A stretch of 63,385 nucleotides of DNA, the filler included, from Octopus bimaculoides (Eukaryota), in NCBI RefSeq assembly GCF_001194135.2. It is 6 parts of 5 records of this genome, joined end to end, with 100 filler letters (N's around TTAATTAATTAA, not from the genome) between each part and the next. Parts side by side here need not be neighbours in the genome. Positions count along the whole stretch, not along the records: positions 39,518 to 61,619 come from NC_068984.1; 5 more parts are not named here. One strand, written 5' to 3'. Under the pieces are notes generated by a model. The model did no database searches. It was not told where the DNA came from and saw only the letters and a program-made list of their open reading frames with translations. Positions 43,728 to 57,486 of this stretch are shown piece by piece. How positions within the stretch are numbered: position 1 is the stretch's first letter; every line of letters starts with the position of its first letter. The position numbers were made by a program, and so were the translations under genes.

Positions 43728-43980
43728 TTTTCATTCTTGATATAAAAGCTCCTCCAGCCACAATAAGAATAATCACAAGTATGAACGCTCCTATAGCGAA
43801 AATAAGTCCAGTATGATCAAATGGCAATTTGGGTTCTTTCGTGATTGTGCTGTTATCGCAGCAATCCATATTTTCAGCACACTCAACTTTCAATTCAGAT
43901 ATTTCCTCTCTCTTATGATTATAAAGCTTCATTCTAGTTTTATCAATGGTAAGACCACTTTCTTGGCTAAATGAACCAAT
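43728..43980 (-). CDS. Exon F: end of VFT2, 3-Cys linker and TM helix (IGSFSQESGL...ECAENMDCCDNS...GLIFAIGAFILVIILIVAGGAFISRMK)
   Basis: Acceptor tttcag at 43981, donor gtaaga at 43727; phase 0 start matches exon E; ends in phase 1. Confidence 0.85.
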
Positions 43981-44204
43981 CTGAAACATAAAGAAGTTTA
44001 TAGCAGAATAAGTTAAAAATAATGTAAACTTGAAATTTGTATTCAATTTAATTGTTCATTAAGAGGAAATACATAATACACATGTAAATGGAGAAATGTT
44101 CACTTCTATGAAAAAGAGCAGAGGGAAATAAGTCACAGAATTCTATCATGTTGGTGGAGTTTTGAGAAAAATGAGTTAATGATGCAATATAAGCCAGATG
44201 CAAT

Positions 44205-44390
44205 ATTATTATTATTATTATTATTATTATTATAATTATTATTATAATAATAATAATAATAATAATAATAATAATAATAATAACAACAACAACAACAACA
44301 ACAACAACAACAACAACAACAACAACAACAACAACAACAACAACAACAATAATAATAATAATAATAATAATAATAATAATAATAACAATA
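44205..44390. repeat. Compound (TAT)/(AAT)/(AAC)n microsatellite
   Basis: Direct reading. Confidence 0.95.
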
Positions 44391-45796
44391 CAATGCCTGG
44401 ATGCAGTACGGATGCCCGGATGCAGTACTAATGCTCAGATGCAGTGTAAATGCCCACATGCAGTACCAGGCAGTGGTTCTCATGGCTTCTGATCTTAACT
44501 GATTGGAAGTGTTATCATGTACATTGTTTTGTCTTGGTATAAAAGATGGGCTACAGCAAATATTCTGCATAATACCACAGATTTGCTTGTCAGTTGTTTG
44601 ACCTTAACCAGTTGAGCATGTCCCTTGGTGGCTGACGATATGTGCATCTCTGATCATGAGCAAATGATAGATAAAGAATACACTGTAACAGTGTTATAAC
44701 AAAATAAAATAGAAACAGCAGCAGTAACAAACATGTAACGAACCAACAATCAATATTTCCAACACACTAACTTGAACTGTAAACTGTACCTGGACTTCAA
44801 AGACCAAACTACAAACTGCTAACTATGTCAGACTGCTACTATTTATATGTAGTGGTCTTGTCAGAGGGTGTCGTACTCTCGCCACAACAGTTACCCAACA
44901 GGGTGCATAACTCAGAGATCAGTGAGTCTCTCCAGGTCAAGCTGCTACTTCTCCACATTGAGAGGTCAAAGTTCCAGTGCTACAGACATGATTAGAATGT
45001 CACAAGAAAGAATTGCAAGATGAACCAATGAGCAAAAGACCAAGGGGTAGACCAAAAATGAGATGGTTGTATACTATCTGTAGTAGCACTTGGGAATTCA
45101 GCCAGAATGTCAAATGATGGCTGCTTCTGAGAGGATCCTATGGAAGAGCACTCTAACCCCATGACCCAATACTAGTATAATAGGCACAGAAAGTGAATGG
45201 ATGAATGGATTACTACAGAATGATATATTACACTGCATTTATGAGAACTTTTAACAGAACACTTACGTATTTTACTAATCATCATCTTTATCATCAATTG
45301 TTGAACAATACTGACTCAAATCGTAGGACTCGATGGTCTGATTACCCAGTTTCAATGATGTATGAGTGACCAAGATCACAACATTTCCCTGAACAAGAAT
45401 GCCAGTCTGTCACAAGATTACTCATTTATAGCTGAGTAGATTGGTTCAACATTACGTGAAGCATCATGTTCAAGAACACGCTACACTGCCCAGTCTGCCA
45501 TTTGAAACCAGTCTTGCAATTGTGAGTGCAACAACCTAACCACTTGGCCATGCATCTTATTTTACTAAGCCAACTATGAAATATCTATAATTAAAAGTGG
45601 CCATTCATTTAAAATAACTTCAATATAATCCTGTAACTTCAAACACTACTATTTTAGATATTATCTTGTATTCTTCAACAAATCATTTTAATCTGTCTTA
45701 GACTTCTTGGTTGGAAAATATTTGCCAGCACCAGAATAAAATAGCTGTATAGGAAATGTTATAGTGATATTTTTTAAAATAGATAAGAAAAAATTT

Positions 45797-54873: not shown

Positions 54874-55816
54874 CTGTGGGAATAAAACACAAAATTCACT
54901 CTTTAAACTGAACGTGATTATTTTATTTATCCTTTTTTTGTTTTTATTATTAGATTTTAGGGGCTAATGCAGTTTCGCACCTTTCCTTGAAAAATGCATT
55001 TTATTTTTTTAAAATTTTTCGGATTCCTATGTTTTAGATGTCGGAAATTAAGAATATGCAAAGAAAAATACTGGTACTTAATTTATTGACCCCAAAAGGA
55101 CGAAAGGCAAAGTTGACTTCATTCATAAAATATATTTGTCAACTAAATGTGGCAGTCCTATAGTGGACGATGTTACTGTTGTTTTTAGCCCCAGGAAGGC
55201 ACTCATATCTAGCTATTTCTTTATGCACCTATCTTATTGAATTTAAAACTTTCAAAACATGGTTTCTTGCATATCCAGAATCTCCATCATCTAAAACATA
55301 GGGAAAAAAAGTCTCAAAAAGGTTCAAAAGTTAAAGNNNNNNNNNNNNNNNNNNNNNNNNNNNNNNNNNNNNNNNNNNNNNNNNNNNNNNNNNNNNNNNN
55401 NNNNNNNNNNNNNNNNNNNNNNNNNNNNNNNNNNNNNNNNNNNNNNNNNNNNNNNNNNNNNNNNNNNNNNNNNNNNNNNNNNNNNNNNNNNNNNNNNNNN
55501 NNNNNNNNNNNNNNNNNNNNNNNNNNNNNNNNNNNNNNNNNNNNNNNNNNNNNNNNNNNNNNNNNNNNNNNNNNNNNNNNNNNNNNNNNNNNNNNNNNNN
55601 NNNNNNNNNNNNNNNNNNNNNNNNNNNNNNNNNNNNNNNNNNNNNNNNNNNNNNNNNNNNNNNNNNNTTCCAAACTTCCAAGATATGTCTGGCCATTGGA
55701 AAATGTTATCTTATTTAGAAACAGGTGAGTTGTTGGTGGCAGTAATAACATCCAGCTGTAGAAAATCCACCTCAGCAAATTCTGTCCAATCCCAAGCATA
55801 AAAAAGTTGACATTAA

Positions 55817-56276
55817 CTCTTTTGTTACTGTATTCATTTTACTGTATTCTATGTTTCTTTCAATTAATTTTAAATATAACAAAGAATTTAGTAAAATAAC
55901 TTGGTTATCATTAAGCTAGTGTTAGGAACATAAATTGTGACTAAGGTTTGATGGAAGATTTTAATTCAAAACTTATGAAAACAAGACATTTGTACTACAG
56001 AGCCAGAGGTGGTTTCAGTCGGGTTGGTATCAAACAGTTAAATTAATCATATTAACCCTTTTGTTACCATATTTCTGTTGAGATGCTCTCTGTTTCTTTC
56101 AATTACTTTAAATATAACAAAGAATTTAGTAAAATAACTTAGTTATCATTCAGCTATTGATAGGAACAAAAATTGTGACTAAGGTTTAGTGGAAGATTTT
56201 AATTCAAAACTTATGAAAACAAGACATTTGTACTACAGAGCCAGAGGTGGTTTTGGCCAGGTTGGTAATGAAAGGG
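55817..56276. mobile_element. Two tandem piggyBac-like MITE copies (55817-56037, 56056-56276)
   Basis: TTAA flanks; CCCTTT...AAAGGG termini (degenerate in copy 1); about 220-bp similar bodies. Confidence 0.7.
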
Positions 56277-57354
56277 TTAAATGATGGTGATGATATCTAA
56301 AAATTTTATGATTAAAAACCCAGCTTCAACTTAGAATCTTGTTAAAAGTGGAGGTATTATAATAGAAAAAAGATTGCATTAAGAAGGATAACAATTTATA
56401 TAATCCAATTGGTAATCTGTTTGATATAAGACTTAATATCTAAACAGCCAAACTATATTAAATCTTTTTCTCTTTCACTCATTTCAGTCATTAGACTAAG
56501 GCCATGCTGGGGCACTGCCTTGAAGAATTTTTAGTCAAATTAATTGAACCACGTAATTTTTTTTTTCTTTAAAGCCTAGTGCCTATCCTATCGATCTCTC
56601 TTGCCAAACTGCTAAGTTACGGGGATGTAAACACACCAACAACGGTTGTCATGTGGTGGTGGGGGACAAACACACTCACACACACGCACACACACACACA
56701 TCACACAAACACACACGTGTGCGCACACACATACACACACATATATATACAACAAGCTTCTTTCAGTTTCCGTCTACCAAATCCACTCACAAGGCTTTGG
56801 TTGGCCTGAAGCTATCGGAGAAAACACCTGCCCAAGGTTCCATGCAGTGGGACTGAACCTAGAATCATGTGGTCGAGAAGCAAGCATCTTACTACACAGC
56901 CAGATCTGTATAAATTTTTATTGTATTTTTCATAAAATAAACACAAGGAAGCTGATTATTGAAGAAGCTGTGCTTAACAACCACATGGTTTCAGATTCAG
57001 TCCCACTTCACATCACCTTGGACAAGTGTCTCCTACTATAGTTCCTGGATGATAAATACCTTGTGGGCAGATGGAAACTGTGTGGAAGCTTGTAACATAT
57101 GAACGCTTGTTACATGTACCCCACTGCTTCACAATTGGTGTTGGTTTCTCTATGTACCCCATAACTTAGCAGTTTGTTAAAGAAACCAATAGAACAAGCA
57201 GCAGACTTTAAAGAAATGAGAACCAGGGTTGATTTGTTCAACTAAAATTCATCAAAGCAGTGACCCTACACGGCTGCAGTCTAACGACTGCAGTCTAACG
57301 ACTGAAACAAATAAAAGATGAAAGACGGACTATGTTTTCAAAATTCTAGCTTAC

Positions 57355-57486
57355 CTGTGTATGGAGTGCCTTTCTTTGTGCTTGGTTCACCACAAAGACC
57401 ATCTTGAGAATAAGGAGATTTGTATATATCATATACATAATTAGCTGCAATCTCTGGTTCTCCACAAATATCAAATATGGTAAATT
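57355..57486 (-). CDS. Exon A of VFT1 (FTIFDICGEPEIAANYVYDIY...LCGEP...TPYT); most 5' exon visible
   Basis: Acceptor ttgattaacag, donor gtaagc; phase 1 to 1; I.DIC matches mGluR I.DTC. Confidence 0.8.

Follow-up and report, generated by a model that had tools for sequence, protein, structure and literature searches.

Class C receptors are, as the textbooks have it, obligate dimers of Venus-flytrap (VFT) domains with one VFT on each subunit. In the GABA-B (GB1/GB2) and T1R heterodimers one VFT binds the ligand and the other has lost its pocket, and the NCD3G domain is absent in GABA-B. NPR-C, a natriuretic peptide receptor (NPR), is composed of a VFT, one transmembrane (TM) helix and a short tail, and the two VFTs of BvgS play unequal roles. 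Venus kinase receptors (VKRs) are invertebrate proteins that are present in molluscs as well (PMC3703292). The literature on tandem VFTs that we found, in a limited collection, dealt with bacterial and trypanosome proteins only; this collection held no paper on metazoan tandem class-C VFTs or on the loci described here, nor a characterised family with two VFTs on a single-pass protein. In this study we analyzed the gene LOC106872190 of Octopus bimaculoides, which was noticed in a window of 63,385 nucleotides (nt), that is, the whole stretch of DNA that was analysed, joined from parts of the RefSeq assembly GCF_001194135.2. The piece concerned (39518-61619 in the window) is metazoan, AT-rich DNA with 37.5% G+C. 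We show that LOC106872190 represents the octopus in a lophotrochozoan family whose proteins are single-pass and have two VFTs. The gene has been annotated already but is unstudied, and the family as a whole is apparently unstudied, too.

On the minus strand of the window, from 57486 to 43728, six exons (A to F) encode VFT1, a linker, VFT2 and a TM helix, as the first-pass annotation, made from the sequence alone, had proposed. They have canonical AG/GT splice sites and compatible phases throughout (A/B 1, B/C 0, C/D 0, D/E 2, E/F 0; exon F donor phase 1), and conceptual translation of the joined exons gives a product of 906 amino acids (aa), open at both ends, that matches the RefSeq protein of LOC106872190 (P0001, 1022 aa, 'uncharacterized', Octopus bimaculoides) at 100% identity and 100% coverage. 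The exons and their junctions were thus correct, but the gene extends further: it has eight coding exons in all, exon 1 and exons A to G, and exon 1 and exon G lie outside the span first proposed. Exon 1 (aa 1-93, with the signal peptide and the first strands of VFT1) is also outside the analysed piece, about 9.4 kb upstream and past a 2.2-kb run of Ns, at 10001-10280 in a copy of the locus from GCA_001194135.2 (L001). Together with the window exons A to G it translates exactly to P0001, with a coding sequence of 3069 nt.

The protein begins with the signal peptide and the distal VFT1; about 45 aa of flexible linker lead to the membrane-proximal VFT2, after which come a stalk with three conserved cysteines (C950, C956 and C957), the TM helix and a tail. 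As anticipated, a Pfam scan matched ANF_receptor twice, to VFT1 (E 1.1e-12) and to VFT2 (E 1.1e-38), and found no 7tm_3, NCD3G, kinase, kinase-homology or cyclase domain in the octopus protein; over all Pfam scans, ANF_receptor and Peripla_BP_6 were the only families recovered. A hydropathy scan found a single hydrophobic segment after the VFTs of this type-I membrane protein, and beyond the TM segment (aa 973-995) just ISRMKNQCEQTKVKTLCGTSENAVSQC is left, a 26-aa tail ending in -SQC.

The two VFTs of the octopus protein share 26% identity (E 4e-10). In a search of PDB sequences VFT2 was nearest to mGluR3 (E 1.1e-46), and its 60 listed solved matches contained no NPR: nearly all were metabotropic glutamate receptors (mGluRs), with CaSR and T1R1 coming after them. 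The best solved match of VFT1 was T1R3, at a marginal E of 7e-4. An AlphaFold2 model built on an alignment of 41 family members reached a mean predicted local distance difference test (pLDDT) of 80.4, mostly above 90 in VFT2 and mostly 80-90 in VFT1, with a disordered loop (118-131), a linker of low confidence (454-478) and a single long helix (973-1002). Its top solved matches in Foldseek were agonist-bound ectodomains of mGluR2/3/8 (E ~1e-31, TM-score 0.83-0.87 on target). VFT1 is a bona fide class-C VFT, and VFT2 is an mGluR-type clamshell whose alpha-amino-acid (backbone) binding signature is complete.

Word-indexed protein searches gave few relatives of this protein; it was an exhaustive, profile-free search of representative proteins that exposed the family. 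This search found 4166 relatives; architecture was taken from the best 150, and clusters were counted at 50% identity. Class 1, with at least 40 clusters, combines two VFTs and one TM helix with a tail of 20-700 aa in which Pfam recognises no domain. It is present in bivalves (Pecten, Solemya, Sinanodonta, Pinctada), in gastropods (Haliotis, Bulinus, Batillaria, Patella, Aplysia), in Octopus and in the brachiopod Lingula. Class 2 has two to five ANF_receptor VFTs and then a 7tm_3 bundle, without NCD3G, and was found in the nemertean Tubulanus and in Argopecten, Physella, Octopus bimaculoides, Saccoglossus, Acanthaster and Branchiostoma. Its members (P0006, P0008, P0010, P0012, P0017, P0058, P0067) span protostomes and deuterostomes, and some of them are single transcript-assembly contigs of ~9 kb. 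Proteins of both classes are all named 'uncharacterized' or 'hypothetical'. LOC106872190 has the traits of class 1: a signal peptide, a VFT1-type domain, a VFT2-type domain with the CGxxR arginine, a C-x5-CC stalk and one TM helix. The architecture is no singleton; it belongs to a broad lophotrochozoan family that is related to multi-VFT class C GPCRs. In profile scores and in a neighbour-joining tree of single VFTs, class-1 VFT1s group with the first VFT of five-VFT receptors, and class-1 VFT2s cluster together beside the later VFTs of multi-VFT receptors. The cephalopod clade has 84-100% bootstrap support in this tree and the deep nodes 8-46%, and we regard the relationship between the two classes as a lead, not a result.

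Some further multi-VFT proteins came up alongside these. Octopuses also have a larger relative of 2189-2570 aa with at least three VFTs and then 7tm_3, named 'uncharacterized' or 'mGluR3-like' (LOC106868777, P0019/P0166, in O. bimaculoides; P0094/P0174 in O. sinensis and O. vulgaris). A class C receptor of the insect Vespa velutina (LOC124954133, P0179, 1981 aa; NCD3G, ANF_receptor and 7tm_3) is a distant match, roughly double the normal length, and might be an arthropod receptor with several VFTs. Two partial 'CASR protein' models of Polypterus senegalus (P0004 and P0005; 3171 and 3927 aa, ~10 VFT matches) were dropped as multi-VFT evidence because they are most likely fused models of tandem arrays of V2R/CaSR-like genes; four TM segments were predicted in one of them and none in the other.

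Pocket positions were mapped via a HMMER alignment to mGluR3 (2e4u) and via the 41-member family alignment. In mGluR3 we take Ser151, Thr174, Asp194, Tyr222 and Asp301 to be the backbone contacts of the ligand, and Arg68 and Lys389 to be the side-chain carboxylate contacts. VFT2 keeps all five of the former, as Ser587, Ser610, Asp630, Tyr658 and Asp741. At the same positions VFT1 has Tyr145, Glu168, Met185, Tyr213 and Asp281, so that three contacts are lost and two, Tyr213 and Asp281, remain. The motifs that the first-pass annotation had named were all recovered, in VFT2 GSLSSSV (583-589), SYAASS (606-611), TVPSD (626-630), NYG (657-659), GSDAW (739-743), AGEA (516-519) and the Arg833 before NAV, and in VFT1 GDYSV (143-147), ISPLFE (163-168) and LPME (183-186).

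The side-chain contacts of VFT2 differ from those of mGluR3, as had also been noticed at first: Arg68 of the 'QR.EA' motif is replaced by Ala516, and Lys389 by Arg833, so that of the two carboxylate contacts one is lost and the other kept in conservative form. The Arg68-equivalent position is basic in none of the 41 family members. Arg508, three residues past the CG motif, is Arg in 37 of the 41; where mGluR3 has Lys389, the octopus subgroup has Arg and other members have Trp or Leu. The pocket of VFT2 is hence predicted to be unlike that of mGluRs yet still basic, and because Arg833 and the family-conserved Arg508 would keep it so, an acidic ligand is conceivable. The idea of a different amino-acid ligand, drawn originally from the missing arginine, is plausible but not required by these residues; a ligand other than glutamate is a reasonable guess rather than a deduction.

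Across the family, the signature of five contacts is complete in VFT2 of ~33 and in VFT1 of ~26 of the 41 members, and most members have two intact pockets. A degenerate VFT1 is confined to the cephalopod clade and one bivalve subgroup. All cephalopod orthologues combine a degenerate VFT1 with an intact VFT2. The nearest non-octopus relatives of the octopus protein are decapodiform (the decapodiform P0003 is 88% identical to a protein of Acanthosepion pharaonis, and P0178 is 61% identical to P0003). Because decapodiforms share the degenerate VFT1 and intact VFT2, the VFT1 pocket was lost before the octopus/decapodiform split. The binding/non-binding asymmetry suggested by the first-pass annotation is thus borne out in cephalopods (five of five contacts against two of five), but it is a derived cephalopod state and not a principle of the family.

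The ratio of nonsynonymous to synonymous substitution rates (dN/dS) was calculated from decapodiform transcripts, and the two Octopus species were compared by per-domain protein identity. Between two cuttlefish-type transcripts (P0003 and P0176) dN/dS was 0.38 in VFT1, 0.30 in VFT2 and 0.74 in the tail. The proportions of synonymous and nonsynonymous differences in VFT1 were clearly apart (pS 0.105 vs pN 0.042, p 2e-4), and the value of the tail showed no difference from 1. Against a more distant decapodiform VFT1 gave a dN/dS of ~0.17, with dS saturated. Between O. bimaculoides and O. sinensis identity was 84.0% in VFT1 and 87.6% in VFT2 (p 0.14); at deeper divergence, octopus against P0003, it was 29% in VFT1 and 41% in VFT2, which indicates that VFT1 evolves faster. 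VFT1 is degenerate, yet it is under purifying selection.

Such a pair of VFTs might form an intramolecular pseudo-heterodimer like GABA-B, packed lobe 1 to lobe 1 within one chain, with VFT1 tuning the affinity of VFT2 and transmitting its closure. The asymmetry in sequence is real and conserved in cephalopods, VFT1 is held by purifying selection, and the 45-aa low-confidence linker is by our estimate long enough for side-by-side packing. However, with two intact pockets in most members the asymmetry is not the design of the family, and related GPCRs with three to five serial VFTs suit a beads-on-a-string arrangement more than obligate pairing. The AlphaFold2 model, with a predicted template-modelling score (pTM) of 0.56, carries no interdomain information. 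In 28 of the 41 members VFT1 carries a cysteine in the disordered loop ahead of the 'GxxxS' strand (Cys125 in the octopus), and in five members VFT2 does. This cysteine lies at a position that we take to be the site of the mGluR inter-protomer disulfide, and in VFT1 it rather suggests pairing between chains. On balance we think GABA-B-like packing within the chain unlikely.

Many class-1 tails are long and of low complexity and end in -ISRV, -SSEV, -THV, -LVI or -FII. Pecten, Solemya, Haliotis and Sinanodonta share an identical -ISRV end, and the C-terminus is [ST]-x-hydrophobic or hydrophobic-x-hydrophobic in 25 of the 41 members. Going by general PDZ rules, this suggests that class-1 tail ends are PDZ ligands which anchor the proteins to PDZ scaffolds. 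Tails of decapodiform orthologues are ~160 aa long with a conserved hydrophobic end (-LVI or -FII). The octopus tail is an outlier of the family: it lacks the long disordered tail of the others (60-700 aa) and has no clear PDZ-type end, and a tblastn search found no counterpart of the 162-aa cuttlefish tail anywhere in the 47-kb octopus locus.

Tail ends that resemble PDZ ligands, and a VFT1 conserved without a ligand pocket, could also be expected of an adhesion molecule or synaptic organiser whose VFTs are mainly protein-protein modules, like the amino-terminal domains of ionotropic glutamate receptors, and work without a small-molecule ligand. We find this decidedly improbable: five backbone contacts kept by VFT2 in ~33 of the 41 members over very long times are hard to explain without an amino-acid-like ligand. 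A tail of 26 aa without any domain might instead belong to a non-signalling binding protein that, tethered to the membrane or shed, would act as a decoy, buffer or 'clearance' protein towards an amino acid and be an analogue of NPR-C, and an annotated isoform of O. sinensis (X2) without the TM helix would indeed be secreted. That isoform appears to stem from a frame-shifted exon F, however, and may be an artefact of annotation or splicing, and the ~160-aa decapodiform tails with their conserved hydrophobic end, like the -ISRV ends elsewhere, point to intracellular interactions, so that a mere binding protein seems fairly improbable to us.

With about even confidence we consider the octopus protein to be an amino-acid-sensing subunit or co-receptor that would need a partner to signal, and not an autonomous receptor. 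VFT2 would close on a ligand that is a free L-alpha-amino acid or closely derived from one, in a side-chain pocket unlike that of mGluRs, with the QR.EA arginine gone and Arg508 and Arg833 present. VFT1 would no longer bind such a ligand and might serve as a structural, allosteric or dimerisation module; it retains the loop cysteine at the place of the mGluR inter-protomer disulfide. The conformational change would be read out by a partner, either another membrane protein or a scaffold on the tail; because the tail is too short and the chain has no effector domain, the signal must go to such a partner. The first-pass annotation had seen here a candidate chemosensory or neuromodulatory receptor type. 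A protein that ends 26 aa after its TM helix cannot be a self-sufficient receptor, and the findings lend no support to a chemosensory or neuromodulatory role.

Several points weigh against a sensing subunit of this kind. The conserved residue signature of VFT2 is not a proof of binding, and a dN/dS of 0.3-0.4 is fairly relaxed. The structural model, at its pTM of 0.56, does not fix the relative placement of the two VFTs. The -SQC end of the octopus protein is a weak PDZ ligand at best, which makes the scaffold idea weakest for LOC106872190 itself. Finally, the O. bimaculoides gene model is a computational RefSeq prediction, for which no octopus transcript contig was found.

A computational model could have joined two VFT genes that are neighbours, or the gene could be degenerating in the octopus lineage; an octopus tail shorter than the decapodiform tails would fit such decay, as would proteins that are just 86% identical between two Octopus species (P0001 against P0002, the LOC115210858 protein of O. 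sinensis). The evidence from the gene itself speaks otherwise. Phases match at every junction, exon D has neither a start codon nor a signal peptide, the reading frame is intact in both Octopus species, and VFT1 and VFT2 are equally conserved between them. The two-VFT open reading frame (ORF) is found in single transcript contigs of three decapodiforms and in >40 mollusc and brachiopod clusters. In cuttlefish and squid orthologues both VFTs lie in one ORF on single intron-less contigs of 4.1-4.4 kb, and the view that the two VFTs belong to a single gene has therefore held. An artefact or decaying gene is very improbable indeed.

The features of the locus are collected in Table 1.

Table 1. Exons, assembly gaps and repeats at the LOC106872190 locus. 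Positions are those of the window; residues (aa) are those of P0001.
Feature	Position	Strand	Content	Basis
Exon A	57355..57486	-	aa 94-138, VFT1 lobe-1 segment 'FTIFDICGEPE...', Cys125 loop	acceptor ttgattaacag, donor gtaagc, phase 1; tblastn to P0001 aa 94-138
Exon B	54716..54873	-	aa 138-190, VFT1 degenerate positions Tyr145 (Ser position), Glu168 (Thr position), Met185 (Asp position)	splice sites, phase; family alignment for the equivalences
Exon C	52846..53571	-	aa 191-432, remainder of VFT1, kept Tyr213 and Asp281	Pfam ANF_receptor
Exon D	50184..50410	-	aa 433-508, inter-VFT linker and first VFT2 strands to CGDVR (Arg508)	
Exon E	48245..49469	-	aa 508-916, most of VFT2: Ser587, Ser610, Asp630, Tyr658, Asp741, Arg833	Pfam ANF_receptor E 1.9e-38; HMMER alignment to mGluR3 2e4u
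Exon F	43728..43980	-	aa 917-1001, VFT2 end, stalk Cys950/956/957, TM helix, tail start	
TM segment GLIFAIGAFILVIILIVAGGAFI	43744..43812	-	aa 973-995	hydropathy scan, AlphaFold2 helix
Exon G	39958..40025	-	aa 1001-1022 and TAA, cytoplasmic tail ...NQCEQTKVKTLCGTSENAVSQC; outside the 57486-43728 span	tblastn, acceptor tgtcttacag, stop codon
Assembly gap	55337..55667	.	inside intron A/B (57354-54874)	A|B junction without indel in orthologues
Assembly gap	50942..51142	.	inside intron C/D (52845-50411); retroelement fragments at flanks	C|D junction without indel in orthologues
Third N run of the piece	59760-59769			
Retroelement copy	46501-47899	+	intronic	
Retroelement copy	60167-61619	-	intronic	
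Retroelement fragment	51175-51589			
Retroelement fragment	50733-50939			
414-bp dispersed repeat	40367-40780		last intron; inverted pair with next row	98% identity
414-bp dispersed repeat	58848-59260		upstream of exon A	98% identity
Microsatellites	~43300-43700		intron F/G, long arrays, trinucleotide and other	
Microsatellites	44140-44600		intron E/F, long arrays, trinucleotide and other	

Isoform X2 of O. sinensis, annotated for LOC115210858 (P0002), ends in ...KKVNWFIWQRKWFYP, which resembles exon F in another frame; in O. bimaculoides the matching frame of exon F runs into a stop after DWFI. With no TM helix, isoform X2 would be secreted as a protein of two VFTs, unless it is an artefact of splicing or annotation.

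The continuity of the gene across the two intronic gaps was judged from orthologues, as the other copy of the locus (L001) comes from the same assembly and has identical gaps. No insertion is seen at ...GTPYT|AIISLGD... or at ...SIFQK|VGEYFS... in the O. sinensis protein or in three proteins derived from decapodiform transcripts; because these orthologues align uninterrupted across both junctions, no coding exon is hidden in either gap. The gap in intron C/D is probably explained by the retroelement, since this element, found elsewhere in the piece as well, leaves fragments on both flanks. Its copies are 87-93% alike, with ORFs that match RVT_1 (E 3e-12) and a PHD finger. The 414-bp repeat appears to be a young element of unclassified type, and in translation the microsatellite arrays give poly-N, poly-Y, poly-C, poly-L and poly-I runs. 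Some 7.4 kb past the stop codon and outside the window (44597-47194 in L001) lies the adjacent gene, of the same orientation, which encodes a protein with CN_hydrolase and HIT domains (a NitFhit-like fusion).

What makes these findings interesting is not so much the one octopus gene as the family that LOC106872190 exposed. A single-pass chain with two VFTs, together with relatives that place as many as five before a seven-transmembrane (7TM) bundle, means that clamshells can be strung in series and separated from G-protein signalling. In cephalopods VFT1 is a natural experiment, with a pocket lost throughout the history of the group in a domain that is still selected, and it bears on what non-binding VFTs such as those of GB2 and T1R3 contribute. 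With their conserved PDZ-type C-termini the family members are candidate amino-acid sensors in molluscs, and their ectodomains are tractable for ligand screens and structures. As a broader and doubtful, if conceivable, extension, tandem-VFT proteins might make up a so far unrecognised branch within the class C superfamily. This branch would comprise a lophotrochozoan single-pass form, PDZ-anchored via its C-termini, and a 7TM form with up to five serial VFTs in nemerteans, molluscs, hemichordates, echinoderms and amphioxus, with VFT1 of the cephalopod single-pass members as an intrachain non-binding regulator of VFT2, and with signalling of these members via a partner protein and not via a G protein. 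If this were true, the principle of GABA-B and T1R would have been recreated within a single chain.

Among the known systems, the group II mGluRs (mGluR2/3) are homologous to VFT2 over the whole clamshell, and VFT2 keeps counterparts of Ser151, Thr174 (as Ser), Asp194, Tyr222 and Asp301. In contrast to mGluR2/3, the octopus protein has no cysteine-rich domain and no 7TM bundle, an extra VFT in front and one TM helix, and in the pocket of VFT2 Arg68 has become Ala516, Lys389 has become Arg833 and a family-specific Arg508 follows the CG motif. In class IV (DmXR-type) mGluRs the backbone contacts are kept and the side-chain contacts are changed (PMC6307864). Compared by description, this is the pocket pattern of VFT2, although class IV receptors are canonical single-VFT 7TM receptors. 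The division into a binding VFT and one that has lost its pocket is shared with GABA-B and T1R, where the VFTs sit on two separate 7TM subunits and not, as in the octopus, in tandem on one single-pass chain.

VKRs and NPRs resemble the octopus protein in that a membrane protein with a single pass bears a VFT from the ANF_receptor superfamily. They have one VFT, however, and VKRs have a tyrosine kinase and NPR-A/B a cyclase, neither of which is present here; to NPR-C the likeness is in the short-tail layout only. Lacking a 7TM bundle and a cysteine-rich domain, the octopus protein is not a class C GPCR, and lacking a catalytic domain it is neither a VKR nor a receptor cyclase. The bacterial sensor kinases BvgS/EvgS, Vibrio CdgH and the adenylate cyclases of Trypanosoma brucei have tandem VFT or periplasmic-binding-protein (PBP) domains followed by one TM helix, as found here, but they belong to another branch of the PBP fold and have cytoplasmic catalytic domains, so that the likeness is one of design, not of descent. 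The nearest relatives in sequence are the multi-VFT class C GPCRs of class 2, which end in a 7TM bundle where the octopus protein has one TM helix, and whose first VFT scores best against the profile of class-1 VFT1.

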